Virus record (IMG/VR): IMGVR_UViG_3300024259_002152 | Coordinates: 124,001 to 188,000 of that record | Length of the DNA stretch: 64,000 nucleotides | Reading direction: 5' to 3' (one strand) | In this document: in pieces, positions 7,457 through 21,914 of the stretch | How positions within the stretch are numbered: the stretch's first letter is position 1 | Layout: every line of letters starts with the position of its first letter | The notes under the pieces: generated by a model | Told to the model about the DNA's origin: nothing | Database searches by the model: none | Seen by the model: the letters and a program-made list of their open reading frames with translations, nothing else | Position numbers and translations under genes: made by a program

Positions 7457-7703
7457 ATTAGAAATTGAGGACAAAGCAAAGAAATCTATTGTAGAGGTAT
7501 TAAGAGTGGATGTTGATTCCATTGCTGACGACTCTCGTTTGGGAATTGATCTTAATGCTGATAGTTTGGATTTAATTGAGCTTATTATGCAAATAGAAGA
7601 TGATTTCGACATTGAGATTCCTGATGAGGAAGCAGAGTCTATTCTTACGTTTAAATCTTTAGTAGATGTTGTGGAAAAAAAATTAGAGAATGAGTCTAGC
7701 TAA
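7449..7703 (+). CDS. acpP: acyl carrier protein
   Basis: DLNADSLDLIELIMQIEDDFDIEIPDEEAE with the DSL phosphopantetheine serine. Confidence 0.92.
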   Translation: MDRLEIEDKAKKSIVEVLRVDVDSIADDSRLGIDLNADSLDLIELIMQIEDDFDIEIPDEEAESILTFKSLVDVVEKKLENESS

Positions 7704-8091
7704 ATATATTCCTTTAAGAGAAGCTTCTGTACAATACGGCAATAAAGATATGCCAGTAGTGGCTATTAAGGGATTTACTATAGATATATCACGTTTAACT
7801 GCTTCTTACGAGATATGGTTGAATGTTAATGATGCTTCTGGGATAGTCGCCGCTTCTGATAATGTTGTAACTAATGCTATTAGTATGGTTTCTACAGATA
7901 TGAATGAAGCAGCAACTTTTATCATAGATGGAGTATTAGTTTCTTGCTTTATAAAACACTATATTTATCATTCTATCAAACATGCTTATTTGGTTAAAAT
8001 AGAATTTTTATTAGATAAAAACGAAGTCAAATCCTATATGTTTGAAGAAGAGAATGGGGAACAGACTCGTTTTGATATATTGGATTTATAG
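7690..8091 (+). CDS. hypothetical protein with C-terminal RFDILDL
   Basis: ORF; terminal motif at 8068-8091. Confidence 0.7.
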   Translation: MSLAKYIPLREASVQYGNKDMPVVAIKGFTIDISRLTASYEIWLNVNDASGIVAASDNVVTNAISMVSTDMNEAATFIIDGVLVSCFIKHYIYHSIKHAYLVKIEFLLDKNEVKSYMFEEENGEQTRFDILDL

Positions 8092-8100
8092 GAGATAAAA

Positions 8101-8454
8101 ATGAGCGGAGATTGCAAACAAATTGTGATTGATGACTCGGTGGCTGACAAAGAATCTATTTATAAGATATTATCGGAATTTGCTCGTGACGAAAAAGTTT
8201 CAGTTTTCAAAGTGGGAGACACTTCTACTGCAAATATGAAAAAAATGAATGAATCATGTATAAGATATCGGGAGGAAGTCCACAAATTGGCAGAAAGAAC
8301 CAAAAGATTAGCAAAGGAAGAAAAAAGACGGAAAAAAGAGTTATCCAGGCTTAGAGAGGAAGAGAAAGAACTTGTTAAAAAATTATCAGATATGGAAAAA
8401 GAAATAAATTTTAGAGTAATAAATGATAATCGTGCTAATTGGTTGGATTTATGA
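8101..8454 (+). CDS. coiled-coil hypothetical protein with C-terminal RANWLDL
   Basis: GGAG RBS; terminal motif at 8431-8454. Confidence 0.7.
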   Translation: MSGDCKQIVIDDSVADKESIYKILSEFARDEKVSVFKVGDTSTANMKKMNESCIRYREEVHKLAERTKRLAKEEKRRKKELSRLREEEKELVKKLSDMEKEINFRVINDNRANWLDL

Positions 8455-8918
8455 TGGACCTATTACAAGTTATAATTCCTGATGTTTCGAATTTTTATAT
8501 CCTATTAAAAAACGGAGAAAGAATACCTATATATCGATATTCAAAAATTGATATTAATTTTTGTGAGAGGACTGTCTTTAAAAATGGTGCTAGTCAGAAA
8601 GTTCAATCTCCTCTTATTACTTATAAAATTGAATTAGATAAAGATTCTAAAGAAAAATTAAAAACATTGTTTTCTAATTATTCTTGTTCTTCGACTTTAC
8701 ATACAAGAAGAGCAAAAATCAAAGTGGGTAAGTATGGATATATATTTGATGTAGATATATCGGCAAGACCTGACATGGGAGATTCTTATCTTTTGAAAAG
8801 AGGATATAGAGAAAGTATTGAAATATCCTTAAAGCTAGAGAATACAGATATATCTTTATTCGATGATGCAGAAGAAGCTTATGAAAAATATAGTCGTTTT
8901 GAAATATTGGACTTATAA
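8451..8918 (+). CDS. hypothetical protein with C-terminal RFEILDL
   Basis: ATGA overlap with the upstream stop; motif at 8895-8918. Confidence 0.7.
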   Translation: MMDLLQVIIPDVSNFYILLKNGERIPIYRYSKIDINFCERTVFKNGASQKVQSPLITYKIELDKDSKEKLKTLFSNYSCSSTLHTRRAKIKVGKYGYIFDVDISARPDMGDSYLLKRGYRESIEISLKLENTDISLFDDAEEAYEKYSRFEILDL

Positions 8919-9367
8919 TGGCATACGGCAGCGTCACGACACTTTTAGGTGATAATTTTTCTATTTATTATGGTGATTGCGAAATTATTACAAATTTTTG
9001 TATTGACCATATGGAATTTGATGGTCATTCTCACTCTGGCAATGTTATATATAATTTTACAGCAGATTGCACTGATGTCCAATTTAATGGATGGCAAGAG
9101 GATTTTTCGAGACCTTATTCTGGTGGCGTAAATGTTGTAGCAAAAAATGGTGAAGATGTAGAAATCCCTATTTGTATGACCTCTTATGAGGTGCATCAAA
9201 ACGATATCGATATTACTAGCATTGATGGACAGCATTCTGTTCTTCCTGGAGAAAGACGTATAACTGTTTGTGGTTATATTGATTCTGGAGATTTTTCTGA
9301 TGTTGAGAGGAAAGAGACAAAAGAAGAAACATCGATTTGTAGTCGTTTTGAAATATTAGATTTATGA
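8918..9367 (+). CDS. hypothetical protein with C-terminal RFEILDL
   Basis: TAATG coupling; motif at 9344-9367; internal IDITSIDG...LPGERR is weakly tail-tube-like. Confidence 0.7.
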   Translation: MAYGSVTTLLGDNFSIYYGDCEIITNFCIDHMEFDGHSHSGNVIYNFTADCTDVQFNGWQEDFSRPYSGGVNVVAKNGEDVEIPICMTSYEVHQNDIDITSIDGQHSVLPGERRITVCGYIDSGDFSDVERKETKEETSICSRFEILDL

Positions 9368-10077
9368 ATAACACTTACACTCAATTAGTTAATAAGCATA
9401 TAGGGAAATTATGCATAATATTAGGAGCAGGACCATCTTTACATGATTTGTGTATATCTCCTTATTTTAAAGAAATATTAAATTATGTTGTTATTTCTAT
9501 TAATTCGGCATTTATGCCTTTGGCAGAATTTGATCTTGACCCAGAGAAACATTATTGGGTGTCCAATGACGTATTGTGCCGTAGATGGACCTATTGGAAA
9601 GATGTTGAGAAATCTAATTGCACAAAAGTAGTTCGTGATAGTTGGCTAAAATATAGAGAACAAATGAGCAATACTTTGTTTTTTTCTCCACGTCCTACTT
9701 CAGAAGATATAGTTAATCCCAAAGATGTTGGACTTTGTTATTGCTCTTCTGGACCTACATCACTAGATTTAGCTCTTCAAATGGGCTGTAAATTAATTTT
9801 TCTTTTCGGAATAGATCATAATGATAATGATAGGAAACATCATTTTTGGCAGTCGTTATATGATAGAAAAAATAGACCAACTGCTAATGCTAATATTTAT
9901 GATTCTTGGAAAAAACAAAATAGGGTTTTTGAATTTAATGATAAATCTTATAAAGCATTAAAGAAATTTGCTGATATAAAAAAAGCAGAGATATATAATT
10001 GTAGTAATATTACTAAAGTTACTGCTTTTGATAGAATATCGATAGACTATGCTTTTAAATTAATAGGGAAAAAATGA
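9364..10077 (+). CDS. DUF115/Maf/MptE-like (sialyltransferase-like fold) protein
   Basis: IILGAGPSL, ISIN, SGPTSLDLALQMG...LFGID and IYNCS motifs. Confidence 0.7.
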   Translation: MNNTYTQLVNKHIGKLCIILGAGPSLHDLCISPYFKEILNYVVISINSAFMPLAEFDLDPEKHYWVSNDVLCRRWTYWKDVEKSNCTKVVRDSWLKYREQMSNTLFFSPRPTSEDIVNPKDVGLCYCSSGPTSLDLALQMGCKLIFLFGIDHNDNDRKHHFWQSLYDRKNRPTANANIYDSWKKQNRVFEFNDKSYKALKKFADIKKAEIYNCSNITKVTAFDRISIDYAFKLIGKK

Positions 10078-10526
10078 AAACTTCATATTATTACGAAAAG
10101 GCAAAAGACCTAAATGCCGTGTCTATAGCAGCTAAAGCTCCATCATGGTATAAGGGAAGAGAGTATAAAAAACTTGCTCCTAAATATTGGTTTTTTAAGA
10201 AATATAAAAAGGATGAAGATGAAGATTTTTATACAGAGCATTACTATAAAGAAGTGTTGGACAAGTTAGATCCAGCAGAGGTGTATAAAGAACTAGGGAA
10301 AGATGCTATTCTTCTTTGCTGGGAAGCTCCAGATAAATTCTGCCATAGACATATTGTTGCAGAATGGCTGGCGTATAGATTAGGAGTAAAAGTGGAGGAG
10401 TATAAGAGTATAGATGATATTATTGATGAATGGCATAAAGGGGATAGTGATCTTGAGTTGCACGAGTATTTAGGAATGAGTTTAGAAGAATATGGTAAGT
10501 TTGTAAAGGGAGAATACAATGAATAA
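10074..10526 (+). CDS. DUF488-family protein with a C-terminal extra domain
   Basis: KKLAP, LLCWE and FCHRHIVAEWL motifs. Confidence 0.75.
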   Translation: MKTSYYYEKAKDLNAVSIAAKAPSWYKGREYKKLAPKYWFFKKYKKDEDEDFYTEHYYKEVLDKLDPAEVYKELGKDAILLCWEAPDKFCHRHIVAEWLAYRLGVKVEEYKSIDDIIDEWHKGDSDLELHEYLGMSLEEYGKFVKGEYNE

Positions 10527-10547
10527 AAAGATGATAGGAGTAGTATC

Positions 10548-10928
10548 GTGGAAACAGATTCTGATAGATTAAAAAAAATGCAGACAAAAGTGGTTGAGCT
10601 TAAGAAAAAGCTACAAAAGAAACAGACTATTCGAGAATATCTAGAAGATATTCCAAAGAGTTGTTATAAATTAGGTGCTGTTGTAAGATTTTTAAATAAT
10701 TGTAAAAAGAAATATAAAAAGTATAAGTCTTTTGATGTTTATGGATCTCAAAATTATGATGGATCGAGTGGTATCAGAATTTATGGACTAAGATTTGAGA
10801 CGGAAAAAGAATATACACAAAGAACGGGAAAAACTAAATATCAGAGACAAAAAGATGCATTGGCTGACAGGAAAATGGAAAAAGAGAAATTAAGAGAGTT
10901 GATGATAAAATATCCTGAAGGAGTTTGA
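10548..10928 (+). CDS. hypothetical protein
   Basis: AGGAG RBS plus GTG start. Confidence 0.6.
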   Translation: METDSDRLKKMQTKVVELKKKLQKKQTIREYLEDIPKSCYKLGAVVRFLNNCKKKYKKYKSFDVYGSQNYDGSSGIRIYGLRFETEKEYTQRTGKTKYQRQKDALADRKMEKEKLRELMIKYPEGV

Positions 10929-10941
10929 TAAGGGGAATAAT

Positions 10942-11277
10942 ATGATATATTCCGTTGATAAAACATTTTTTCTTTCTACGGAAGATAGATATCCTATCTC
11001 TCCTTTTAAATATGAAAAGAAAATAAGTAAAGACAAAGGATATATAATAGATAAAGATGGTATTATATGGATATTAACACATATGGTATTAGATGATAAG
11101 GATTATGGACAATGTTATTATGATGGTTGTTTAAGAGAATGTGTTACTTATATCGTTATGTATGACGGTTATTATAATTATCTAAATGTGAGATCACACA
11201 TAAAAGAGCATCTTGCTCCTAAAGAGAAATTTTATAACGAATTTTTAGGCCAATATGATAATGTTGGAAAATTATAA
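10942..11277 (+). CDS. hypothetical protein
   Basis: AAGGGG RBS plus ATG. Confidence 0.6.
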   Translation: MIYSVDKTFFLSTEDRYPISPFKYEKKISKDKGYIIDKDGIIWILTHMVLDDKDYGQCYYDGCLRECVTYIVMYDGYYNYLNVRSHIKEHLAPKEKFYNEFLGQYDNVGKL

Positions 11278-11292
11278 GATAAGGAGATTTTC

Positions 11293-11631
11293 ATGGAAGT
11301 AGGATTTGTTTTCAAAGCAAATGATAGGTTATTTATTTCAGAATATTTGGGTAATAATAATTTTTCGGATGGTTATCCAATTAGTAATAATGAACCGTAT
11401 GAAGAACTAGGGGAAAATCAATTAGCTTTTGTTGAGATTGTTAAATACCCAACGGAAGATGGAGATATTGTATTTGAATTAAAAGATCATGGTTTTTATA
11501 CTATTGATAATGACTTTAGAGAGGGTGTAAAGGGCTATGAAATTTTGTTGGAGGTAGAGTGCAGAAGTAAATTATGTGAGATTGTAGAAGAATTAACAAA
11601 TAATGCTCTTCAAGATATTAGAAGAAATTAA
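11293..11631 (+). CDS. hypothetical protein
   Basis: AAGGAG RBS plus ATG. Confidence 0.65.
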   Translation: MEVGFVFKANDRLFISEYLGNNNFSDGYPISNNEPYEELGENQLAFVEIVKYPTEDGDIVFELKDHGFYTIDNDFREGVKGYEILLEVECRSKLCEIVEELTNNALQDIRRN

Positions 11632-11649
11632 GAAATAAGGAGAAATAAT

Positions 11650-12681
11650 ATGAATGTAGTTTTAGTCATACCAACTGGTATTGGTTGCGAAATCGGCGGC
11701 GACGCAGGAGATGCTCAACCAGCAGCTAGATTAATAGGATCTTGTTGTGATAAATTGATTCTTCATCCAAACGTTGTCAATGCGTCGGACATCAATGAGA
11801 TGCCTCCTAATGCGTGGTATGTTGAGGGGTCCATCCTAGATAGGTTCCTAGAGGGTCGTATCATTTTGAAAAAACCTTATAGTAATAAGATTTTAGTGGT
11901 AGTAAATGCTCCAGCCGATTATCAATCTATTAATGCCGTTTCTGCCGCAAGGGCTTCTTTAGGTATAGATGCAGAGATAGTTGAATTAGAGACTCCTTTA
12001 GAACTTATTGCCAGAATGGAAAATGGTTTGGCTACGGGAGATGTTCATGGTTGGGAAGCACTAATTAGACAGGTTCAGGATTATGAGTTTGATGCTTTAG
12101 CTATTGCTACTCCTATTACTATTTCTGAAGATGATCTTATATACTATTTTAGAGAAGGTGGAGTAAATCCTGTAGGAGGGGTTGAAGCTGTGGCTTCTAA
12201 AATAATTGCTGATAGGATAAATAAGCCAGTGGCTCACGGTCCTGTTGATTATAGTATGAAAGAATTTCGGGAAGTAGTTGATCCAAGAAAAGCAGTTGAA
12301 ATAATTACAGAGAATTATATTCATTGTATATTGAAAGGACTTCATCAAGCTCCAAGAATAGTTGATGTAGGGTGGGGAGTTCGAGGTGTCCCAGAATTTT
12401 CTGTAAATTGGCTGACTCTTCCTGACATAGATGTTATGATAAGTCCTATGGGATGTTTTGGTCCTCCTCATAGGGCTTGTTTAGCCAGTAATATACCTAT
12501 CATAGTAGTTCGGGAGAACACGACTGTTTTGAATGATTTTGAGGATGGAGATGAGAGATTTATATTTGTTGATAATTATATTGAAGCAGCAGGTATGATT
12601 ATGAGTATGAGAGCAGGAGTTCATCCTCCTACTGTTAGAAGACCGTTAGAATATACGAAAGTTACAAAAAATAGGTTTTGA
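11650..12681 (+). CDS. DUF3326-family protein
   Basis: LVIPTGIGCEIGGDAGDA, LILHPNVVNASD, YVEG and GGVEA motifs. Confidence 0.85.
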   Translation: MNVVLVIPTGIGCEIGGDAGDAQPAARLIGSCCDKLILHPNVVNASDINEMPPNAWYVEGSILDRFLEGRIILKKPYSNKILVVVNAPADYQSINAVSAARASLGIDAEIVELETPLELIARMENGLATGDVHGWEALIRQVQDYEFDALAIATPITISEDDLIYYFREGGVNPVGGVEAVASKIIADRINKPVAHGPVDYSMKEFREVVDPRKAVEIITENYIHCILKGLHQAPRIVDVGWGVRGVPEFSVNWLTLPDIDVMISPMGCFGPPHRACLASNIPIIVVRENTTVLNDFEDGDERFIFVDNYIEAAGMIMSMRAGVHPPTVRRPLEYTKVTKNRF

Positions 12682-12684
12682 CAG

Positions 12685-13800
12685 ATGGACAAAAAAGAAT
12701 TTTGTAAAAAATGTAATATTTCTTTGAAAGAACTAGAAGAATATATATCAGGAAAAATGATTTTTCATGATGTCGATTTTCGAGACTTATTACTAGTTAA
12801 AAATCAGACAGAAGAGATATGTTTAGAAGCAGTTAAGCAAAATGGCTATGCTTTGCATTATGTTGAAGATCAAACAGAACAAATCTGTTTAGAAGCAGTC
12901 AAACAAAATGGTTTGGTTTTAGAATATGTTGAAGATCAAACAGAACAAATTTGTTTAGAAGCGGTTAGACAAAACAGTTGTGTTTTGGAGTTTGTTGAAA
13001 AACAAACAGAACGAATTTGTTTAGAGGCAGTGAAAAAAGGAGGTTTTGCTGTAAAGCATGTTAGAAATCAAACAGAACAAATTTGTTTAGAAGCGGTCAG
13101 GCAAACTGGTCTGGCTTTGGAGTTTGTTGAAGATAGAACAGAATACGTATGTCTAGAAGCAATTAAGCAAACTAGTAATGCTTTGAGATACATTGAAGAT
13201 CAAACAGAAGAGATATGTTTTAAGGCGATTAGGAAAAATGGTCGTGCTATTCAATATGTTAAGAATCAAACAGAACAAATTTGTATAGAAGCAGTCAAAC
13301 AAAATGGAGGTGCTTTGCAATTTATTAAAAAACAGACAGAACAAATATGTTTAGAAGCTGTTAAACAAAATGGTTATGTTTTGCGTTATGTTAAAAATCA
13401 AACAGATGAAATCCGTTTAGAGGCAGTCAAACAATATGGTTTATCTTTGCAATTTGTTGAAAATAAGACAGAAAAAATATGTATAGAAGCAATAAGACAA
13501 ACTGGGACTGCCTTATTGTTTGTCGAGAATCAGACCGAACAAATGTGTTTAGAGGCAGTTAAACAAAATAGTTATGTTGTGAGATATGTCAAAAATCAAA
13601 AAGAAAAAATATGTGAGTTATTGTCAAAAAAACATCCTATTTTTATCCAGTACTCAGATAATTTTGATCTTGATCATATAGTTGAGCTAATAGGTAAAAA
13701 TAGGAAAGTGCTTAATTTTGTAGATTGGGATAGAGTTAATTTTGATAAAACAAAGAAAAGAAAGAAAATTAACAATAGGTTTGAAATATTAGATTTATGA
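12685..13800 (+). CDS. DUF4116-type repeat protein with C-terminal RFEILDL
   Basis: 12 tandem 22-aa repeats QTEQICLEAVKQNGxALxYVxN; terminal motif at 13777-13800. Confidence 0.85.
   Translation: MDKKEFCKKCNISLKELEEYISGKMIFHDVDFRDLLLVKNQTEEICLEAVKQNGYALHYVEDQTEQICLEAVKQNGLVLEYVEDQTEQICLEAVRQNSCVLEFVEKQTERICLEAVKKGGFAVKHVRNQTEQICLEAVRQTGLALEFVEDRTEYVCLEAIKQTSNALRYIEDQTEEICFKAIRKNGRAIQYVKNQTEQICIEAVKQNGGALQFIKKQTEQICLEAVKQNGYVLRYVKNQTDEIRLEAVKQYGLSLQFVENKTEKICIEAIRQTGTALLFVENQTEQMCLEAVKQNSYVVRYVKNQKEKICELLSKKHPIFIQYSDNFDLDHIVELIGKNRKVLNFVDWDRVNFDKTKKRKKINNRFEILDL
12805..13596 (+). repeat. 12 x 66-bp degenerate coding tandem repeat
   Basis: Recurring caaacagaacaaat(t/c)tgtttagaagc with 66-bp period. 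Confidence 0.9.
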
Positions 13801-14096
13801 AATACGGAATAGGCAACAAGGTAAGGATTAAAACATGGGACCAGATGGAGGAAGAATTTGGACTGATTAATGAAACCTATATAAAAATTGATCCATGTTT
13901 TTGTCGTTTTATGGAAAAAGAGATTAATGGATTAAACAATGGCAGAATTGTAACAATTAAAGATACTAAAGGACCAAAATGGTATAAGTTAGAAGAAATA
14001 GGTTATATCTGTGTTGATGATATGATCGAATGTCTAGCAGAAGATTATGTGGAACCAATACCTATTGGGAATAGGTTTGAAATATTAGATTTGTAA
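13797..14096 (+). CDS. hypothetical protein (possibly SH3/KOW-like) with C-terminal RFEILDL
   Basis: MKYGIGNKVRIK start; motif at 14073-14096. Confidence 0.7.
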   Translation: MKYGIGNKVRIKTWDQMEEEFGLINETYIKIDPCFCRFMEKEINGLNNGRIVTIKDTKGPKWYKLEEIGYICVDDMIECLAEDYVEPIPIGNRFEILDL

Positions 14097-14111
14097 GAAA
14101 GGAAAAATAAA

Positions 14112-14579
14112 ATGGCAATTAATTCAGAATTATTATTATTTATAGAACCAAAAGAAAAACCTTCTAACATTCCTATTATTGACGAGTTGACTAAAAAGAT
14201 GTCGGCTTCGTTGAGGAAAGCTAAAAAGGGAACTATACGTAGGTATAGTGTAATGGGTCAGGGGTATGAGTTTAATGAGGGAGATGGATGGTGTGGTTGG
14301 CATAATTGCTCATGTGGAGCAAATGCAGGAGGGCATGACTTTTTATTGTCTAATGGAGAGATGACTAACGCAAATTGTATTCATTATTTAGCATATCATA
14401 GAAAAGAAATATCACAAGAGCAATTAGATAGAGTTGCTAATTTAGGTGATGGTCAAGAAACTCCTGATAGTTATGAGTTAGAAAGAGGTAGAGAAGAATG
14501 GGTTAAACTCATGAATCCTGGCAGATCGAAAAAAGCCATGACTAGACAAGAATATTTAGATGGAATAAAACAAATATGA
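14112..14579 (+). CDS. hypothetical Cys/His-containing protein
   Basis: GWHNCSCG...CIHYLAYHR; AAAGGA RBS. Confidence 0.65.
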   Translation: MAINSELLLFIEPKEKPSNIPIIDELTKKMSASLRKAKKGTIRRYSVMGQGYEFNEGDGWCGWHNCSCGANAGGHDFLLSNGEMTNANCIHYLAYHRKEISQEQLDRVANLGDGQETPDSYELERGREEWVKLMNPGRSKKAMTRQEYLDGIKQI

Positions 14580-14878
14580 AAGACAATAAAATTATTTGTT
14601 TATGTGGTTCTACAAAATTTAAGAAAGAATTTGAAGAAGCGACATGGGAGCAATCGTTAAAAGAGAAAATAGTTTTATCGGTTTGTTGTTTTACTCATCA
14701 TGATAATCTTAAATGGTCTGATGAGCAACTATTACTATTCCATGATCTGCATAAGAGGAAGATAGAGATGGCAGATGAGATATTAGTTGTGAATGTTGGT
14801 GGATATATAGGAAAGACTACAAAGGAAGAGATAAAATATGCCGAATCATTAGGAAAAACGGTTATATATCAATATTAG
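14576..14878 (+). CDS. nucleoside 2-deoxyribosyltransferase-like (DUF4406-like) protein
   Basis: ICLCGSTKF...HKRKIEMADEILVVNVGGYIGKTTKEEIKYA. Confidence 0.65.
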   Translation: MKDNKIICLCGSTKFKKEFEEATWEQSLKEKIVLSVCCFTHHDNLKWSDEQLLLFHDLHKRKIEMADEILVVNVGGYIGKTTKEEIKYAESLGKTVIYQY

Positions 14879-14882
14879 ATTT

Positions 14883-15143
14883 ATGAGCAAATGGATATCA
14901 ATAAATAAAGAACTTCCTCCTTTGAATACATCAGTAGAGATTATATATAATGATCGAATATCTCATGCTAAATTATTTAAGAATAAGAAAGGAATAGTAA
15001 TGTGGAAAGTATCAAATACTTCCTTAAGCGATCCAAGAAGTCTTTATTATAATATTAAATTTGAGCAAAAAGAAGTTCATTTTTGGAGAGAAGAAGAGAT
15101 ATTTGAACCAATTGGGAATAGATTCGAAATATTAGATTTGTAG
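14883..15143 (+). CDS. DUF551-like protein with C-terminal RFEILDL
   Basis: KWISINKELP...VHFW; motif at 15120-15143. Confidence 0.65.
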   Translation: MSKWISINKELPPLNTSVEIIYNDRISHAKLFKNKKGIVMWKVSNTSLSDPRSLYYNIKFEQKEVHFWREEEIFEPIGNRFEILDL

Positions 15144-15159
15144 TTTTTTGAGAAATAGT

Positions 15160-15203
15160 AAAAAGTGGATAATGCAATATTTTTTGCACTGTCCATTTTT
15201 TTT
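15160..15203 (+). terminator. probable intrinsic terminator hairpin
   Basis: aaaaagtggataatgcaa / ttgcactgtccatttttt imperfect stem (2 G-U pairs, 1 mismatch) running into a T8 tract. Confidence 0.55.
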
Positions 15204-15282
15204 GAGAAAAAAGGAGGATTTTGAAGCGTAATATAATAATTAGTATTACAGACTTACAAAATTGCACGATTACGGAAAAAAG

Positions 15283-15798
15283 ATGGCTAAAGATATAATA
15301 GGATTTTACGAGGGTAGAGCTAGGAACCAAGAGGGATATACTATTGACGATATAAGTGGATTTACTGATGCAGGATTGGAGAAAAATCATTGTTATATAC
15401 AGTGGATATTTCCTTTGCCAGAAAAAAGTAAAGCAGTTCCTACTTCTCCTATATTAAGACAAGGAGATATAGACGAATTTAATCGTCGTCCTGATTTACA
15501 GAAGAAGATGAGAACTATGTTTGAAATTATGCTTATGTTCTATGGTCTTAATATTTACGAACATAAAGTAAGAACTTCTTTTGAGCATTGGCATTATAGA
15601 TATCCTGTGTGGTTAACTCCTCGTAATCATAATTTTTTAAGAATAAGTAGAATAATTAGATCTGCGAAGTTATTAGGGTTAAAGGGAGAGGCGCAAATGT
15701 TTTATGATTTTTTGTGCAATATTTATAAAGATAATAAAGGGACCATAGGTCCTGTTACAAAACAATTTTGGGACGAGGCCATAACTAAAGATTTTTAA
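15283..15798 (+). CDS. opioid growth factor receptor (OGFr) conserved-domain protein
   Basis: LEKNHCYIQWIFPL and NHNFLRISRIIRS motifs. Confidence 0.85.
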   Translation: MAKDIIGFYEGRARNQEGYTIDDISGFTDAGLEKNHCYIQWIFPLPEKSKAVPTSPILRQGDIDEFNRRPDLQKKMRTMFEIMLMFYGLNIYEHKVRTSFEHWHYRYPVWLTPRNHNFLRISRIIRSAKLLGLKGEAQMFYDFLCNIYKDNKGTIGPVTKQFWDEAITKDF

Positions 15799-15812
15799 AT
15801 AGGAGAAAGATA

Positions 15813-16127
15813 ATGACAAAAAGAAAGAAAAATGAAAATATAGTAGATCTTAGAAAGAGAGCATCAGATCAAGAGATTATGGACATCTCTCCTGATCCTA
15901 TAATTTGTGATACAGATAATAGTGATGCTAATATTATTCTAGAAACAAGATTAAACGGTTATAGACAAGATAATACTAGGGTATTTTCTATGAGAATGAA
16001 TGAAGATTTATTGACACATATTAAGCAAATAGCGAGAAAAAAGTCTGTCGAATTAAAAAGAGATGTTCCTTATCAATTTCTTATGATCCAAGCTATTGAA
16101 GAGAAATATCCTCTTTCCGAGGAATAA
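15813..16127 (+). CDS. ribbon-helix-helix-like DNA-binding protein
   Basis: C-terminal VFSMRMNEDLLTHIKQIA...PYQFLMIQAI. Confidence 0.55.
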   Translation: MTKRKKNENIVDLRKRASDQEIMDISPDPIICDTDNSDANIILETRLNGYRQDNTRVFSMRMNEDLLTHIKQIARKKSVELKRDVPYQFLMIQAIEEKYPLSEE

Positions 16128-16129
16128 TA

Positions 16130-16849
16130 ATGCAAGTAAGTGATTTTAGAGATAAAAATAAAGGGGAGATAACTTTTTTATTAGGAAGTGGTCCTTCTCT
16201 TCATGATGTAAATATAGATATTATAAAGAATTATTTATGTATAGCAGTTAATTCAAGTATAGATAAATATTCTGATTGTGATTTTTTTATATCTGATGAC
16301 TCTGACATAAAAAGTTGGAATTACTATGACGTTATTAAAAAATCTCCATGTGTCAAATTTTTCTACGAGAAGAAATTTAAGAATATAGTTAGTGATTGGA
16401 AAAATATTATTTTATATGATCACAAGAGTTGGTATTCACCAGAAAACAACAGTTATTATTTGGACGGATTGAGACTTACTAAAGATGAACCGATAATAGG
16501 GGCAAGAATCTCTATGGGCTCCGCTTTGCATATTGCCTATATCCTAGGTTGTAATCCTATCGTATTGATTGGGAATGACGCGAGGGTAGTAGATGGTAAA
16601 AGATATTATTGGCAATTTCCTGGCGAGAAAAAACAATATCGCATAAAAGGTAGAAAATTTACTCGTCAAACTCAACAAATAGGTTTCGATGAAAAAGCTT
16701 ATAGAAAATATTGGGAGAGTTTTGCAGAAGTAAATAAAGATATTATAGGAAAAGAAATTAACATTATAGATGCTTCTAATAGTAGTTTAGATTGTTTTCC
16801 GAAGATGACTATTGAGGAAGTATTAGAAAAGGAGAATAAAAATGAGTAA
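16130..16849 (+). CDS. DUF115/Maf/MptE-like protein
   Basis: FLLGSGPSL, IAVN, SALHIAYILG...LIGND motifs. Confidence 0.7.
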   Translation: MQVSDFRDKNKGEITFLLGSGPSLHDVNIDIIKNYLCIAVNSSIDKYSDCDFFISDDSDIKSWNYYDVIKKSPCVKFFYEKKFKNIVSDWKNIILYDHKSWYSPENNSYYLDGLRLTKDEPIIGARISMGSALHIAYILGCNPIVLIGNDARVVDGKRYYWQFPGEKKQYRIKGRKFTRQTQQIGFDEKAYRKYWESFAEVNKDIIGKEINIIDASNSSLDCFPKMTIEEVLEKENKNE

Positions 16850-17456
16850 AGATAAAGGTATTGTGATGGCTAACGGGGTGGTCCTGAAGGATGGTTTAAA
16901 TAGATTTAAAGCTGATAGGGGGATAGTGTCACAATCTATGTCTCGTATTGCTAAAATATCAAAGGGTTTATATTCTGGGATTCTAAATTCAGATCCTGAT
17001 TTTGTTGAATTTCAGGAAGAAGCTATGGAAGGTGTTATAACAAAAGAAATTGATAAACTTTGTGATAAAGTGGTTTTAGGAGCAGAAAATCAATTGCAGA
17101 AAATATCTGCGCAAATGGTGGCCGATAGGGCAGCAAATTATCGATATTCGGGTAGTGAGAGTCGTCACTCCAATGTTGAAGAGATAGATTTATCTAAAGG
17201 TGAAGATCCAATTAGAGTTAGAGCACGGAAACCAGAAGAGAAAAAAGTTGTTATAAAAGCACAAGATTTAATCAAAGATGAAAGTAACAGGCGTGCCTGT
17301 CTAAATAAAGAAGAATTAGAGAATATAAAAGAAGTTAATAAAGATGTTAAGAAGATATCTGATCTGAGAGATAAAATATTTAAGAAAATTTCAAAAAAGA
17401 AAACGAAAAAATCTGTTAAAAAAGTAATAAGAAAAAAAGGAGTAAATAAAAAATGA
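16842..17456 (+). CDS. hypothetical protein with Lys-rich C-terminal tail
   Basis: AAGGAG RBS; ends KKISKKKTKKSVKKVIRKKGVNKK. Confidence 0.7.
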   Translation: MSKDKGIVMANGVVLKDGLNRFKADRGIVSQSMSRIAKISKGLYSGILNSDPDFVEFQEEAMEGVITKEIDKLCDKVVLGAENQLQKISAQMVADRAANYRYSGSESRHSNVEEIDLSKGEDPIRVRARKPEEKKVVIKAQDLIKDESNRRACLNKEELENIKEVNKDVKKISDLRDKIFKKISKKKTKKSVKKVIRKKGVNKK

Positions 17457-18019
17457 AAGAAAAAACAATTATAATTAAAGATGGTGTAAAATTAGATTTA
17501 TCAACTCTTAGCGAAGAGTGGATAGATGAAGAGATATTGGGAAAAGAAATGCAATATATATCTAGAATGACAGAAGGATTAACAACAGGAACCATGTCTA
17601 GTGATAAGGAATATATCCTTTTAAAAAATAAGGTTGTTGATGAAATGATCAAAAATAAAGTTGTATCCCTAAAAAAGGAATTATGTGAGGCAGCGAAGAA
17701 AAAAACTGACATTTATGACCAAGCGGATATGATTCAGGCGCAAGCCCTCCAGAGGATTCAGGATAATGCAAGAGCAGTAGCTAGAGAGAATGATAGGGAG
17801 ATGCCTATAGATAAATTAAAGGATATCGTAACAAAATACAACCTAAAAGATCCTGCCCTTGATTGCATAGCTGATCATCCCAACATCGAGAAAGTAGCAG
17901 GAAAGGTGCAGAAAAAGACGATAAAAAAGAAGAAAGTTAAGAAAAAAATACTTAAGAAAAAAATAGCTAGGAAAAAAATAGTTAAGAAAAAGGTTACTAA
18001 GAAACGTGATAGGCGATAA
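17453..18019 (+). CDS. hypothetical protein with histone H1-like pentapeptide tail
   Basis: KKTIK-KKKVK-KKILK-KKIAR-KKIVK-KKVTK. Confidence 0.7.
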   Translation: MKEKTIIIKDGVKLDLSTLSEEWIDEEILGKEMQYISRMTEGLTTGTMSSDKEYILLKNKVVDEMIKNKVVSLKKELCEAAKKKTDIYDQADMIQAQALQRIQDNARAVARENDREMPIDKLKDIVTKYNLKDPALDCIADHPNIEKVAGKVQKKTIKKKKVKKKILKKKIARKKIVKKKVTKKRDRR

Positions 18020-18737
18020 AAAGATATTAACTATAGTTACGGCTCGTGGTGGGTCGAAAGGAATTCCAGGGAAAAATTACCGAGATTTATGTGGATATCC
18101 TTTATTCATGTGGTCCATGTTGGCTTCTTTAGAATCAAAATATATTGATGCTACTATTTTATCTTCTAATTGTGATGAGTGTTTGAGAATTTGTGAGCAA
18201 TGTGCAGGAGAGGTAGATAAAGATAAGACATATGGTTGGATTGTAAGACCAGACGAATATGCTACAGATCTTTCTAAGAATGAAGATGCTCTTATTCATG
18301 CTCTGAAATTTCTTAATGAAGAATATGATGTTGTTATAAATTTACAACCTACCTCTCCTTGCAGATTGGATGGATTGTTAGATAGAAGTATCGAAGCATA
18401 TTATAAAGGAGGATATGACAGTTTATTGACCGCTGGTAAAGATACTCCTTTTATATGGCAAAAAATAGATGAAAAATGGGAATATACTGTTGATAAGAAT
18501 CCTTCTTGTGAAAGGAAGATGAGGCAAGAGTTCGATGAAAATGAATTTATCTTTCATGACAACGGCAACATTTACCTAGTAGAAAGTGAAATTTTACTTG
18601 ACACAGAATGTAGAATAGGGTATAACCCATGTGTTGTAGAGACAAGTGGTATAAATAATATCCAAATTGACCAAGAGTTTGATTTTCTTTTAATCTCTAA
18701 ACTATTGGAATCAATGAAGTTAGAAAGACCAATATGA
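18006..18737 (+). CDS. acylneuraminate cytidylyltransferase (NeuA family) #1
   Basis: TARGGSKGIPGKN, LQPTSP and NGNIY motifs. Confidence 0.9.
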   Translation: MIGDKKILTIVTARGGSKGIPGKNYRDLCGYPLFMWSMLASLESKYIDATILSSNCDECLRICEQCAGEVDKDKTYGWIVRPDEYATDLSKNEDALIHALKFLNEEYDVVINLQPTSPCRLDGLLDRSIEAYYKGGYDSLLTAGKDTPFIWQKIDEKWEYTVDKNPSCERKMRQEFDENEFIFHDNGNIYLVESEILLDTECRIGYNPCVVETSGINNIQIDQEFDFLLISKLLESMKLERPI

Positions 18738-18801
18738 TGAAAATAAAGGAATTGATTATCTTTTTACAGAACGTTATTGTAGTTTTGTAAAGGAGATAAA
18801 T

Positions 18802-19725
18802 ATGAATAAATATTTTTGGACAGAAGAGGAGATAAATGTTGTTAGAAATACGGATTTAACTTTATCTGAAATGATGGGATTACTTCCTAATAGAACTTAT
18901 TCTGGCATTAGAGGGCAAATTAAAAAACAAGGGATATCATTAAGTAAAGAATCTATTTCAAAGGCACACACCTTGGGCCATCTAGGTATTAAAGAAGCTG
19001 ATATTGATAAAATCTTAGCAGATTCTAATTTTTTAGATATAATAAATGGTAATCTGTTGGGCGATGCATGGATAGATAAGTCTCATAACTTTGGATTGGC
19101 GAATATTAGTAAAGAATTTGTAGAACATGTTAATGTAGAACTTAATCGAATTTTTAAAAGTAATTCTAAAGTTTGTGTTAAATTGTCAAATGAGGGAAAG
19201 ATAAATGGGAAAAGATTCAAGAGAAAAAAACAATATTATATGAGTAAATCTTGTAAGCCAATTTTTCGTAATTTGTATTATCAATGGTATGAGAATGGGG
19301 AGAAAATAGTTCCAGACGAATTAGATCTTACTCCCATGTGCTGTTATTTTTGGTATATAGGAGATGGTTGTATAAATTGTAAAGAGAAAAGACAAAGCGC
19401 TTCAATATCTCTTTCCACAAATGCTTTCTCTAAAAGATGTGTGGAGAAGCTTCTTAATAAAATGCAGGATAAAATTAATGGATTTAATGCGTCTGTCCAT
19501 TTTTTGAAAGATAAACCAGTTATTTTTATTAGCGGTCGATTTGTTTTGAAATTTCTAGATTATATCGGTGATGGATTTTTAAAATCATTTTCTTATAAGT
19601 GGAATTTAAATGGTTATTCTGAACAAAAGACCGTCTGTAAGGTTTGTAATAAGGAATTTGTCCACTACGGTTTTAAGAAAAATTATAGAACTCAATGCAG
19701 TGTTTGTAGAAAGAAATTAAAATGA
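18802..19725 (+). CDS. free-standing double-motif LAGLIDADG homing endonuclease
   Basis: IINGNLLGDAWI and YFWYIGDG motifs, LSTNAFS, C-terminal CxxC...CxxC. Confidence 0.85.
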   Translation: MNKYFWTEEEINVVRNTDLTLSEMMGLLPNRTYSGIRGQIKKQGISLSKESISKAHTLGHLGIKEADIDKILADSNFLDIINGNLLGDAWIDKSHNFGLANISKEFVEHVNVELNRIFKSNSKVCVKLSNEGKINGKRFKRKKQYYMSKSCKPIFRNLYYQWYENGEKIVPDELDLTPMCCYFWYIGDGCINCKEKRQSASISLSTNAFSKRCVEKLLNKMQDKINGFNASVHFLKDKPVIFISGRFVLKFLDYIGDGFLKSFSYKWNLNGYSEQKTVCKVCNKEFVHYGFKKNYRTQCSVCRKKLK

Positions 19726-20498
19726 ATTTGATTTTTTTGGGAGTTGCTTCTGCATTAAGCAATGGTTATAACTCCAATATATTAATAGAAGATAAAAAAA
19801 ATGCAATGCTTTTTGATTGTGGAGAAGATATAAAACACTCGCTTAGGGCAGCAGGAAGAAAGGTAGAAGAATTAAATTCGGTATATATATCACATTTGCA
19901 CTCTGATCATTGCTATGGGTTGAGTTGGCTCGGATATTACTCATATTTTATTTTGAAGAGAAAAATTAATCTTTATATCCATGAAAGTTTGGTTAATGAG
20001 CTTTGGTGTATGTTGTCACCAGCTATGAATAAACTTCAAGGCGGTTGTAACTTCGAGACTCTTGCAACGTATTTTAATGTTCGTTCTATTCCTGATGATG
20101 ATCCTATTTTTTCATTTGGGACGGCGGAAATGGAGTTAATTAAAAATAAACATATTAGTTCGTTTGTTGGTAATATGTATAGTTATGGTTTGCTGATTAA
20201 AGATGATAGTTATAAAAAGGGAATATATATATCTGCTGATACTATGTTTATTCCTCCAGGCACCATTTGGAATGAAAAAATAGATTTTGTTTTTCAAGAT
20301 GTTGATGTTTTTAATTTAGGAGGTGTTCATTGTAATTATAACGTATTAAAAGAGATGCCTCTTTATTATAAAGAACGGATATGGCTTTACCACTATACTG
20401 ATCTTTCTAAATATGATGGGAAGTATGGAGAGATGCCTGATGCTGTTGCAGATGGATTTGCAGGTTTTGTTAAAGAGGGGCAAGTGTTTGAGTTTTAA
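19722..20498 (+). CDS. MBL-fold hydrolase, anti-Pycsar Apyc1-like
   Basis: FDCG, HLHSDH, LW, YFNVRS, SADT, GGVH and LYHY motifs in the order recalled for Apyc1. Confidence 0.75.
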   Translation: MNLIFLGVASALSNGYNSNILIEDKKNAMLFDCGEDIKHSLRAAGRKVEELNSVYISHLHSDHCYGLSWLGYYSYFILKRKINLYIHESLVNELWCMLSPAMNKLQGGCNFETLATYFNVRSIPDDDPIFSFGTAEMELIKNKHISSFVGNMYSYGLLIKDDSYKKGIYISADTMFIPPGTIWNEKIDFVFQDVDVFNLGGVHCNYNVLKEMPLYYKERIWLYHYTDLSKYDGKYGEMPDAVADGFAGFVKEGQVFEF

Positions 20499-20515
20499 TA
20501 TTATGAGAAATTTAT

Positions 20516-20803
20516 ATGGCAAAAGAATTAACCTCATCAGAGATAGAAGAATTGGATAGTTTAATAGAATGGGGCGGTGAATTTGGCGTAGGGTCCCCAG
20601 GATATGTGGAAACTCCCATTCATCCAAAAAGTGAGGTTGTTTCTAGTAATAATAATTTGGTTCATCCTTTTTCTGATGACGGAGTTGATGAAAGATGTTT
20701 AGAATATTGGGAAAAGATGGAATATAGAAAAAGGCCAAGAAAATTCAGAAATAAAATAGAGAATAATAAGATAAAAACCAGAATTGAAATTTTAGACTTA
20801 TAG
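20516..20803 (+). CDS. hypothetical protein with C-terminal RIEILDL
   Basis: Terminal motif at 20780-20803. Confidence 0.65.
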   Translation: MAKELTSSEIEELDSLIEWGGEFGVGSPGYVETPIHPKSEVVSSNNNLVHPFSDDGVDERCLEYWEKMEYRKRPRKFRNKIENNKIKTRIEILDL

Positions 20804-20816
20804 AGAGGTAGAAACA

Positions 20817-21110
20817 ATGAAAGGTTATGATGTATTTTTTACTGATCCAGACTCTGTTGATGAGATGAAATGTAGAGTATGTGGAACGTTTTGCGATGTG
20901 AAACGTGGAGAAAATGGTTCAACTGGATGGGCTCAAGCCATGGCGAACGGCAAAACTTTGCATGATTATTTTTATTGTCCATACAAAGAAGAAAAATGGC
21001 ACGAACAGGCATTTAGACTTGTCCAAGATATTGAAAAGTGTTATAGTCCATCTTTGAAAAAGATAATGGAAGAGGATTTAAAGAAAATGATTGAAGATAA
21101 AGGAAAATAA
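20817..21110 (+). CDS. hypothetical Zn-ribbon-like protein
   Basis: CRVCG...HDYFYCP...WH; GAGG RBS. Confidence 0.65.
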   Translation: MKGYDVFFTDPDSVDEMKCRVCGTFCDVKRGENGSTGWAQAMANGKTLHDYFYCPYKEEKWHEQAFRLVQDIEKCYSPSLKKIMEEDLKKMIEDKGK

Positions 21111-21111
21111 A

Positions 21112-21654
21112 ATGAAAACAAAAAGTTATTACGAAACAGATACCCACGTATATTTCTATGGTTCGTGTTATTCTCAATGGGCCATGAGAAGTTTTGAATT
21201 AGATGGTAATCTTTTTAATTGCTGTGAGCAGTATATGATGTATAGAAAAGCTAAACTTTTTGGAGATCATGAATCTGCTAAAAAGATTTGGAGTTCTGGA
21301 GATCCTGCTGAGCAAAAAGCATTGGGAAGAAAAGTTAAAAATTTCGATAAAGATAAGTGGGAAGAAATAGCTAGAGATGTTGTTTATAAAGCTAATTATG
21401 CTAAATTTACTCAGAATGAAGATTGTAAACAACAGCTATTAGAAACAAAACATAAAATTATTGTTGAAGCCAGTCCTACAGATTGTATCTGGGGAGTGGG
21501 TTTATGGGCTACAGACTGTAAAATATTAGATTCCAAGAATTGGAGAGGAACTAATTGGTTAGGAGAAGCCATAATGAAAGTTAGAAAAGCATTGCAGGAT
21601 ATAGATAAACAATCAAACCAAAGTTATGCCAACATAGGATGGGATAGCATGTAA
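21112..21654 (+). CDS. NADAR (YbiA/DUF1768) family hydrolase
   Basis: SQW, EQYMMYRKA, KALGR, KFTQN, VEASPTDCIWG and GTNWLGEAIM motifs. Confidence 0.93.
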   Translation: MKTKSYYETDTHVYFYGSCYSQWAMRSFELDGNLFNCCEQYMMYRKAKLFGDHESAKKIWSSGDPAEQKALGRKVKNFDKDKWEEIARDVVYKANYAKFTQNEDCKQQLLETKHKIIVEASPTDCIWGVGLWATDCKILDSKNWRGTNWLGEAIMKVRKALQDIDKQSNQSYANIGWDSM

Positions 21655-21667
21655 AGGAGAAATAAGA

Positions 21668-21913
21668 ATGCCAGAAGAGAATAAAGAGAAAAAGGTTGGA
21701 GTAGAGATTCATGGTCCTAATATTTTGCACGGCAAGAGGGCAAGATTAGTCAGAGGAGAACAAGAGGTTATTGGAGTTTTGTTAGCTAATGATAGTCAAG
21801 TTAATTCTGATAAATTCGCTTTTCAATTTGTTAATAAGCATGGAGTGAAAAGTATTAGTCAAGTGACTAAGGATGAGTTACAAAATATTGATGAGTATTT
21901 GATTGATTATTAA
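21668..21913 (+). CDS. hypothetical protein
   Basis: AAGGAG RBS. Confidence 0.6.
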   Translation: MPEENKEKKVGVEIHGPNILHGKRARLVRGEQEVIGVLLANDSQVNSDKFAFQFVNKHGVKSISQVTKDELQNIDEYLIDY

Positions 21914-21914
21914 A

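Follow-up and report, generated by a model that had tools for sequence, protein, structure and literature searches.

The window analyzed here is a stretch of 64,000 nucleotides, positions 124,001-188,000 of the 350,866-bp IMG/VR huge-phage contig IMGVR_UViG_3300024259_002152. Eight ORFs on its + strand encode small proteins that end in R-x-x-[IW]-L-D-L directly before the stop codon. The coordinates of the ORFs and their tags are as follows.

7690-8091 (+): tagged ORF 1, 133 aa, orphan body with no Pfam or PHROG family; tag RFDILDL at 8068-8088, stop TAG.
8101-8454 (+): tagged ORF 2, 117 aa, coiled-coil-like body with only weak coiled-coil Pfam hits below their cut-offs; divergent tag RANWLDL at 8431-8451, stop TGA.
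8439-8918 (+): tagged ORF 3, 155-159 aa (start at TTG 8439 or ATG 8451), orphan body with no Pfam or PHROG family; tag RFEILDL at 8895-8915, with the stop TAA overlapping the ATG of the next gene.
8918-9367 (+): tagged ORF 4, 149 aa, orphan body with no Pfam or PHROG family; tag RFEILDL at 9344-9364, with the stop TGA in an ATGA overlap with the next gene.
12685-13800 (+): tagged ORF 5, 371 aa, eight DUF4116 repeats (Pfam, E 2.5e-51) and a Lys-rich linker; tag RFEILDL at 13777-13797, stop TGA, ATGA overlap with the next gene.
13797-14096 (+): tagged ORF 6, 99 aa, predicted SH3-like barrel and linker EPIPIGN; tag RFEILDL at 14073-14093, stop TAA.
14883-15143 (+): tagged ORF 7, 86 aa, DUF551-like N-terminus and linker EPIGN; tag RFEILDL at 15120-15140, stop TAG, followed by a 119-nt gap.
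20516-20803 (+): tagged ORF 8, 95 aa, orphan body with no Pfam or PHROG family and a basic linker; tag RIEILDL at 20780-20800, stop TAG.

The first-pass annotation had reported this heptapeptide on eight unrelated proteins, and its observation was confirmed in full, except that its ranges include the stop codon. In the six-frame translation of all 64 kb, the strict motif R[FIA][EDN][IW]LDL occurred 8 times, always in these coding frames directly before a stop, and never internally. At the DNA level, the degenerate pattern gave 9 matches at up to 2 mismatches, against 1.4 +/- 1.2 in shuffled sequences. Codon usage within the eight tags varied as described (Arg CGT x4, AGG x2, and AGA x2, as well as TTT/TTC, ATA/ATT, TTA/TTG, and GAT/GAC). 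No other ORF in the window carried the motif, including those for UvrD, Dam, ACP, the two MptE-like proteins, the cytidylyltransferase, the Apyc1-like protein, NADAR, and the whole glycan block at 22-64 kb. ORF 7 has a near-identical homologue (P0011), and DUF551 hits were obtained in two other tagged proteins.

We then asked how far the tag extends beyond the window. In the ~134 kb of the contig that was examined, we found at least 28 tags, which lie in six clusters across 22-256 kb. Across related contigs, the same tag, with the extended consensus [ED]-P-I-x-[NSD]-R-F-[ED]-I-L-D-[LI], ends 243 distinct proteins, which fall into 123 BLAST-unrelated body clusters (79 of them singletons) in 57 loci from 297-548-kb phage contigs and many metagenomes. 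In tag-positive loci, 36% of ORFs of 60 aa or more are tagged. An excess of terminal over internal occurrences had been named in advance as a criterion, and the core motif was found in the last 10 residues 209 times and elsewhere twice in 93,495 residues, indicating that the tag is specific to the C-terminus. Recognisable enzymes lacked the tag. None of 27 hits of the DNA pattern in genomes of 185,579 species lay at an ORF end; however, because the catalogue was seeded with an AT-rich DNA pattern, absence from cellular genomes and from other phage clades is only weakly established. In addition, a 461-kb relative has one protein ending in ...NYFEWIDLD, and divergent versions of the tag may have been missed. 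A literature search with the peptide strings gave no hit, nothing relevant appeared in a jumbo-phage comparative review, and we found no description of the tag.

To determine whether selection acts on the peptide or on the DNA, we compared codons across 157 independent tags. Synonymous variation occurred at every position (Arg AGA 110, CGT 35, and AGG 8; Ile ATA 85, ATT 40, and ATC 10; Leu TTA 78 and TTG 57; Asp GAT 98 and GAC 58), and all three stop codons were used, indicating that selection acts on the peptide and not on a DNA repeat. Conservation in orthologues, whose absence the first-pass annotation had listed as grounds for rejection, was also observed. Families are tagged nearly all-or-none (39/40, 8/9, 7/7, and 6/6, against 0/13 and 0/6), although a few (ACP, SSB-like, and some SH3-like paralogues) have both tagged and untagged members. 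The SH3-like family of ORF 6 is the largest tagged family, with 40 members in the fetched loci and 509 in a 5.8-billion-protein database, and 114 of its top 115 homologues in that database carry the tag. Untagged SH3-like paralogues stop exactly at the linker, and in tagless phages the same domain is fused to a different C-terminal domain. Similarly, ACP and SSB-like domains occur both with and without the tag. All three of the refutation tests of the first-pass annotation that can be computed came out in favor of the tag.

AlphaFold modeling of ORF 6 (mean pLDDT 89.7) gave a confident barrel, for which Foldseek found SH3 and Tudor folds only weakly, followed by a linker of falling confidence and a short helix at residues 94-97 inside the tag, where the last 10 residues average 58. 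Eight membrane proteins carry the tag after a Lys-rich segment that should face the cytoplasm. About 10-40% of tags carry 1-4 extra residues after the final Leu; recognition of a free alpha-carboxylate, as by ssrA/ClpX or PDZ domains, is therefore unlikely.

Taken together, these findings support well a portable docking peptide selected at the protein level. In our preferred explanation, to which we assign a probability of about 0.6, the heptapeptide is the core of a 12-residue C-terminal short linear motif, with R-x-x-[ILM]-[LM]-D-[LI] as the minimal core, which is maintained by purifying selection and has been grafted onto more than 100 unrelated families of small, mostly acidic, function-unknown accessory proteins in one lineage of huge phages. 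In this view, after a flexible, often Pro- or charge-rich linker, an N-cap residue (N/S/D) would start a two-turn amphipathic acidic helix (capping box N-x-x-E) that inserts into a hydrophobic groove of one common receptor, so that dozens of different proteins per genome would be tethered to the same hub for recruitment or co-localisation. Because extra residues and rare internal positions are tolerated, the receptor would read the helix and not a free carboxylate. Since the tag appears confined to this phage lineage and was not seen at ORF ends in cellular genomes, we consider a phage-encoded receptor somewhat more likely than a host one. The existence of the tag, its portability, terminal specificity, peptide-level selection, conservation in orthologues, linker-plus-helix model, and absence from recognisable enzymes are shown by the analysis, whereas docking to a single hub is inferred from the uniformity of the motif; no receptor was found, and binding was not assayed.

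The interpretation of the first-pass annotation, that a portable address label recruits diverse cargo to one hub, was thus partly supported: portability, the flexible linker, and peptide-level selection held, but no hub was identified, and the specific analogies to clamp-binding motifs, the SSB tip, and the ssrA degron failed membership tests, as did PDZ-type recognition. The tagged proteins have no known functions, so nothing indicates what recruitment would achieve, and the sequence does not distinguish between recruitment, packaging, and degradation. The leads for a partner, none of them proven, are a phage actin-like core protein, virion loading, an AAA+ protease, and a small VWA protein.

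Among the alternatives, a degron or adaptor tail, which would deliver its carrier, or a host protein bound by its carrier, to an AAA+ protease or unfoldase for timed removal of early proteins or degradation of host targets, is unlikely but slightly ahead of the others. The arrangement of folded domain, flexible linker, and short C-terminal peptide matches SspB-type adaptors, the carriers are small early-type accessory genes lying among replication and anti-defence genes, and the cytoplasmic tags of the membrane proteins would be accessible to FtsH or ClpXP. However, the sequence is unlike the known ClpX, ClpA, Lon, or Tsp C-terminal signals, a free C-terminus is not required, no protease or unfoldase was seen in the roughly 134 kb examined, and it would be unusual for a third of the accessory genes to be marked for destruction. 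A cytoskeleton tether, in which the tag would bind the hydrophobic groove of the phage's own actin-like protein, in the way the C-terminal helices of ParR and arcadin-2 bind ParM and crenactin, and tagged proteins would decorate or ride a phage filament, is similarly doubtful. A 341-aa protein at about 30.5 kb on the same contig has a predicted actin fold; AlphaFold plus Foldseek matched the BeeR filament 8r2n (E 1e-8), then actin, ParM, and MreB, and a Pfam Volactin hit (E 4e-59) occurred in a batch profile search. Its gene is the most conserved of its module (85% identity between the two tag-bearing phages, against 29-82% for its neighbours), and in both tag-bearing phages a tagged 72-74-aa gene sits directly upstream of it. 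The ancestral upstream neighbour ends in a conserved acidic amphipathic tip, N-x-D-E-L-E-[DG]-L-L, and binding of C-terminal peptides in the actin groove is established for ParR-ParM and arcadin-2-crenactin (PMC5173319). By contrast, the tip of the neighbouring protein is only weakly tag-like by position-specific scoring (-11 to -18), most tags lie far from the actin-like gene, and this gene occurs in 36 huge-phage contigs, of which only the two tag-bearing phages show tags near it, so it is not specific to the tag lineage.

A virion-loading signal, docking small proteins to the procapsid interior or scaffold for packaging and injection with the DNA, is a little less likely still. Diverse T4 internal defence proteins share only a short capsid-targeting sequence (PMC3012670), encapsulin cargo uses C-terminal targeting peptides on HK97-fold shells (PMC7925596), the carriers are small (median 102 aa) and lie among anti-defence genes (Apyc1-like, NADAR, and macro domain), and two or three tagged genes sit inside the structural module. 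On the other hand, the carriers are mostly acidic (median pI 5.2), unlike DNA-embedded internal proteins, eight are membrane proteins, most tagged genes lie in arrays with replication genes and not with head genes, no structural or scaffold-like protein carries the tag, and the major capsid protein was not located. A sliding-clamp-binding motif, through which tagged proteins would compete for or ride on the beta clamp, is very unlikely. The ending ...I-L-D-L loosely resembles the first four residues of Q-L-D-L-F, and these phages use DnaE-type polymerases, but the phage DnaE ends in its own canonical-looking ...VETVDLF[AS], the tag lacks the conserved Gln and the terminal aromatic residue, and dozens of carriers per genome, none of them a replication enzyme, is not how clamp motifs are used. 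Equally improbable, and largely refuted as the primary cause, is a nucleic-acid element acting as a conserved junction for cassette shuffling or as a termination-reinitiation signal for the next gene, with the peptide as a by-product. Tagged genes overlap the next gene by ATGA in 39% of cases, against 10% for untagged small genes, TGA stops are enriched (48% against 26%), TTA-TGA at the end of the tag creates the ATG of the next gene, and about 21 nt of near-identical DNA recurs dozens of times per genome; a secondary DNA- or translation-level role is therefore not excluded. Nevertheless, Arg switches between AGA, CGT, and AGG and all other positions vary synonymously while the amino acids stay fixed, conservation extends upstream to P-I-x-[NSD] at the protein level, the motif is always in the coding frame, 61% of tagged genes have no ATGA overlap, and 9% are followed by gaps of more than 50 nt.

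Finally, we compared the tag with established systems. Encapsulin C-terminal targeting (cargo-loading) peptides (PMC7925596, PMC8346489) are likewise short, conserved, and portable peptides at the extreme C-terminus, after a flexible linker, that dock otherwise unrelated proteins to one receptor surface; here, the sequence is different, no adjacent shell gene was seen, there are dozens of carriers per genome instead of one to a few, and the carriers are small orphan proteins and not enzymes. The T4 capsid-targeting sequence (PMC3012670) is also a phage-encoded short peptide that is the only conserved part of a diverse, fast-evolving set of small proteins including anti-defence factors, but it is N-terminal, cleaved off by the prohead protease, and carried by a handful of basic proteins, whereas the present tag is C-terminal, on more than 100 mostly acidic families, with no evident cleavage. 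The C-terminal helices of ParR and arcadin-2 (PMC5173319) share with the tag a short amphipathic helix on a flexible tail, and an actin-fold protein is encoded by the same phage with tagged genes directly upstream; however, in those cases one adaptor binds one filament and not a third of the accessory proteome, and there is no sequence similarity and no binding evidence here. The SspB-type adaptor tail and ssrA-type degrons for ClpX have the same order of domain, linker, and short docking peptide, but their sequences are unrelated, and the tag is genome-encoded and not added by tmRNA. Clamp-binding motifs (QL[SD]LF and T4 gp45-binding tails) and SSB C-terminal tips are terminal docking peptides used by replication proteins; the same phages already have separate clamp-type (DnaE) and SSB-type tails, the latter being the acidic ...DDDDDWKNNF tip of the long SSB-like protein, and the tag differs from both and sits on non-replication orphan proteins.

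To confirm the tagged genes, we combined an ORF listing with a six-frame motif scan of the 64-kb window. Eight + strand ORFs, ending at 8091, 8454, 8918, 9367, 13800, 14096, 15143 and 20803, each carry R-x-x-[IW]-L-D-L directly before the stop. The strict motif occurs 8 times in the six-frame translation; all 8 occurrences are terminal and in the coding frame, and none is internal. Arg is encoded by CGT (4), AGG (2) and AGA (2), the codons for Phe, Ile, Leu and Asp also vary, and TAG, TGA and TAA are all used as stops. The bodies are unrelated: a 371-aa protein contains eight DUF4116 repeats (E 2.5e-51), another is coiled-coil-like, and six have no Pfam or PHROG family. By contrast, none of the remaining genes of the window carries the motif, namely those for SpoVS-like, Dam methylase, UvrD with an intein, CYTH, ACP, two MptE-like proteins, DUF488, DUF3326, OGFr_N, a cytidylyltransferase, a LAGLIDADG endonuclease, an Apyc1-like metallo-beta-lactamase, NADAR, a cREC_REC receiver and the glycan block. 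The observation made in the first-pass annotation, that eight unrelated proteins share this C-terminal peptide, is thus confirmed, and the analysis extends it greatly.

The DNA of the window is 31% G+C with a very strong and uniform G>C skew (about +0.3 on the coding strand), and every gene lies on the + strand for 64 kb. About 40 kb of glycan, nonulosonic-acid and methyltransferase genes fill 22-64 kb and continue beyond the window; one look-up further along the contig, in search of hub candidates, returned only more glycan genes. Several other genes of the window and of related loci were of note (L followed by a number denotes a locus, with coordinates within it):

Window 3991-6972 (+ strand), a UvrD-like helicase interrupted by an intein.
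L012:5193-7880 and neighboring pieces, the phage DnaE (Pol III alpha), split into several ORFs with intein and LAGLIDADG insertions.
Window 18802-19725 (+ strand), L180:8681-9592 and L180:15006-15908 (L180 lies on the same contig as the window), free-standing LAGLIDADG or HNH-like genes.
Window 19722-22298 (+ strand), a cluster of likely anti-defense or signaling genes: an Apyc1-like metallo-beta-lactamase (anti-Pycsar family), a NADAR domain protein and a cREC_REC receiver. A macro-domain protein and a PhoH-like protein lie elsewhere on the contig (L180).
L177:7729-9831 and L162:1050-2180, sensor histidine kinases (Cache + PAS + HisKA + HATPase), next to a 205-aa VWA protein with an intact MIDAS motif and a C39-like peptidase.

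We next asked how far the tag extends. A DNA-pattern scan and protein-based look-ups place the window at positions 124,001-188,000 of the 350,866-bp contig IMGVR_UViG_3300024259_002152. In the roughly 134 kb examined of this contig, there are 28 tags in six clusters, at 22, 30 and 95 kb, at 110-116 kb, at 132-145 kb (the window) and at 250-256 kb. The same tag is abundant in two other huge-phage contigs, of 297,710 and 547,943 bp, where it can mark up to 20-24 consecutive small genes in 10 kb, and it also occurs in dozens of metagenome contigs. Pooling all loci gave 243 distinct tagged proteins in 57 loci, whose bodies, with the tag removed, form 123 BLASTP clusters, 79 of them singletons. In tag-positive loci, 36% of coding-strand ORFs of 60 aa or more are tagged. 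The extended consensus is the 12-mer [ED]-P-I-x-[NSD]-R-F-[ED]-I-L-D-[LI] (for example, EPIPIGNRFEILDL), and divergent members show that the minimal core is R-x-x-[ILM]-[LM]-D-[LI]. In a relative otherwise without tags, a 461-kb contig (L182:3168-3653; IMGVR_UViG_3300037247_001786), one orphan protein ends in ...KRRNYFEWIDLD, which scores far above all internal windows with the tag matrix and could be a divergent or ancestral form of the tag.

Searches outside these loci gave little. Megablast of 15 kb and tblastn of the SH3-like protein against 50,697 phage records found nothing, so no cultured phage matches. A profile of the tag alone, run against 1.84 billion representative proteins, returned only 17 hits passing E 0.001, 16 of them C-terminal; because about 36 bits is borderline at that database size, this search was too insensitive for a census. 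A word-indexed search with the last 40 residues of the DUF4116 protein yielded 2 candidates and no hit. In representative cellular genomes there were 27 DNA-pattern hits, none at an ORF end, but the pattern is biased towards AT-rich codons and this evidence is weak. Pfam and PHROG scans of about 100 tagged representatives found nothing except DUF4116, ACP-like, weak DUF551 and zinc-ribbon hits. A promoter and terminator scan was uninformative, finding fewer sites than the shuffles did. We found no paper that holds the peptide strings or describes such a motif in jumbo phages.

The first-pass annotation had specified in advance that the tag would be discredited if it were no more frequent at C-termini than internally, or if orthologs lacked it. 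Neither was the case: the core motif lies in the last ten residues 209 times and elsewhere twice in 93,495 residues, and families are tagged nearly all-or-none (for example, 39/40, 8/9, 7/7 and 6/6, against 0/13 for DnaE pieces). A profile search of the SH3-like family in a 5.8-billion-protein collection gave 509 hits, and 114 of the top 115 carry the tag. The annotation had also argued that selection acts on the peptide rather than on a DNA repeat. Among 157 tags not ascertained by the search pattern, every position varies synonymously, indicating that a DNA-level explanation is not the primary one. However, tagged genes overlap the next gene by ATGA more often (39% against 10%) and use TGA more often, so a secondary role in gene packing or cassette exchange remains possible.

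To examine the anatomy of the tag, we ran AlphaFold on a 32-sequence alignment of the 99-aa protein (13797-14096). The model is a confident SH3-like barrel, for which Foldseek found only weak SH3 and Tudor similarity; confidence falls through the linker, and a short helix spans residues 94-97 inside the tag, although the last ten residues average pLDDT 58. The pattern [NSD]-R-F-E fits a helix capping box, and R-F-E-I-L-D-L would be an amphipathic acidic helix; both are inferences. The final Leu is the last residue in most tags, but one to four extra residues, often Arg (R, RD, RE, RGYK, GNE and others), follow in 22 of 204 catalog members and in 45 of 114 SH3-like homologs. A few proteins carry a conserved internal copy, apparently after two genes fused. 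Some proteins (P0006, P0010, L083:346-795 and L155:901-1482) have two tags, or an internal tag followed by a second body, and appear to be fusions of adjacent cassettes after loss of a stop codon; in some fusions the internal copy has decayed, for example to RFEILNF. The extra residues and conserved internal copies make recognition of a free carboxylate unlikely.

Tagged proteins are small (median 102 aa) and mostly acidic (median pI 5.2), and eight are membrane proteins whose tag follows a Lys-rich segment that should face the cytoplasm. The tag is modular. Untagged SH3-like paralogs in the same genome stop at the linker, and in tagless phages the same domain is fused to another C-terminal domain. 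ACP and SSB-like domains exist both with and without the tag. In particular, there are two SSB-like paralog types, although the SSB assignment itself is weak (PHROG E 0.0016). The long form (L009:8942-9637 and L147:10889-11596) has a classic acidic ...DDDDDWKNNF tip, whereas in the short form (L048:229-747, L110:655-1167 and L180:1207-1713) that tip is replaced by the RF[DE]ILDL tag, which looks like a natural tail swap.

We then searched for the receptor and found none, but three leads emerged. On the same contig, at about 30.5-31.6 kb (L180:9998-11053), a 341-aa protein has an actin fold, with the BeeR filament as its best Foldseek match, followed by actin, ParM and MreB. Proteins of this kind (341-352 aa; also L179:10001-11023) are encoded by a highly conserved core gene (57-85% identity) of a large clade of huge phages, found in 36 contigs, and the gene is the most conserved of its module. 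It sits between a ~1000-aa protein, a Zn-ribbon protein and a 160-200-aa protein on one side and the tail genes on the other, where a capsid gene would be expected; the idea that it is the capsid protein was rejected because of its clear actin fold. In the two tag-bearing phages, small tagged genes have been inserted directly upstream of it, and binding of C-terminal helices in the actin groove is well documented (PMC5173319). However, relatives with this gene show no tags nearby. The 160-200-aa protein encoded just upstream (L179:8606-9178, L180:7993-8469 and orthologs) has a poorly conserved, charged middle and a strictly conserved C-terminal tip, N-x-D-E-L-E-[DG]-L-L, and may be the filament's adaptor or a scaffold. 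We considered this tip as the ancestral tag, but the resemblance E-[LI]-x-D-L seen by eye does not hold up under a position-specific score, by which the tip is only weakly tag-like.

The VWA lead came from analogy with LDV-type ligands of VWA/MIDAS domains, in which an invariant acidic residue is flanked by hydrophobic residues. The Asp of the tag is invariant, and the 205-aa VWA protein, with the motif DRSGS, is shared by two tag-bearing phages, but a 47%-identical VWA relative lies in a contig with no tags within +/-10 kb; these observations point both ways, and the lead is not supported beyond coincidence. Virion loading and a protease both have precedents (PMC3012670, PMC7925596). Acidic cargo, membrane carriers and the genomic position of most tags argue against packaging, and no protease was seen in the roughly 134 kb examined.

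Taken together, these findings support one part of the annotation's interpretation, a portable address label selected at the peptide level, but not the whole of it, because neither the hub nor the fate of the cargo was identified. The occurrence, terminal position, portability and synonymous variation of the tag come directly from the analysis, whereas its helical docking is inferred. A bolder reading, which we hold only tentatively as somewhat less likely than not, is that one lineage of huge phages has evolved a proteome-wide address code. In this view, a single 12-residue C-terminal peptide, carried by roughly a third of the small accessory proteins (50 or more proteins per genome and more than 120 unrelated families), would route them all to one phage-built structure, for example the phage's own actin-like cytoskeleton or another assembly. 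This would be a prokaryotic-virus counterpart of eukaryotic sorting signals or WH2-type actin-binding motifs, and nothing like it has been described.

Most genes of huge phages are small orphan genes with no handle for study, and a shared address tag would give one experimental entry point to dozens of them at once. Finding the receptor would show where a third of the accessory proteome goes, and would reveal a form of intracellular organization or cargo handling in non-nucleus-forming huge phages. The tag would also provide a ready-made portable means of recruiting proteins to a phage structure and a simple sequence marker for recognizing this phage lineage and its accessory genes in metagenomes. 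If the receptor is the actin-like core protein, the tag would define the first set of actin-binding proteins known for a phage cytoskeleton.

Terminal docking or targeting peptides are known as a general kind of feature, but this motif, its scale and its phage lineage appear to be undescribed. We compared the tag with the analogies raised in the annotation and with other systems. Beta-clamp-binding motifs (QL[SD]LF / QLxLxL) have a conserved Gln at position 1 and a hydrophobic or aromatic pair at the end, and are carried by polymerases and by repair or replication factors. In the tag, the position equivalent to Gln is Ile (89%), the terminal residue is Leu or Ile and rarely Phe, and the carriers are orphan proteins; the phage DnaE instead ends in ...VETVDLF[AS], a clamp-type ending distinct from the tag. 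The SSB tip is an acidic run ending in a hydrophobic or aromatic tip (D-D-D-[IL]-P-F type) on an OB-fold SSB. The long SSB-like proteins end in ...DDDDDWKNNF or ...DSDWENNF, and only shorter paralogs carry the tag, indicating that these phages already use separate docking tails for the clamp and SSB networks. The ssrA / ClpX C-motif degron is added co-translationally by tmRNA or ends in an LAA-like tripeptide with a free alpha-carboxylate, whereas the tag is encoded in frame in every gene, which excludes ssrA, ends in L-D-L, and is followed by 1-4 residues in 10-40% of cases. For PDZ class II ligands, the last three residues of nearly all tags (L-D-L or L-D-I) fit hydrophobic-x-hydrophobic, but the requirement for a free C-terminal carboxylate is not fulfilled.

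Like encapsulin targeting peptides, the tag is C-terminal, follows a flexible linker and sits on unrelated proteins. However, no adjacent HK97-fold shell gene appears in the window or in the 57 loci, and the motif is acidic with Arg, Phe, Ile and Leu, in contrast to the Gly/Ser/Leu-rich encapsulin consensus, which was not re-derived here. The T4-type capsid-targeting sequence is an N-terminal signal of ~10 residues removed by the prohead protease, whereas the tag is C-terminal; cleavage was not examined. In the actin-groove-binding helices of ParR and arcadin-2, a short amphipathic helix lies at the C-terminus of a flexible tail. AlphaFold places a helix at residues 94-97 inside the tag, but the last ten residues average pLDDT 58, which leaves the match undecided, and binding to the groove was not assayed. 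As in those systems, an actin-fold protein is encoded by the same element.
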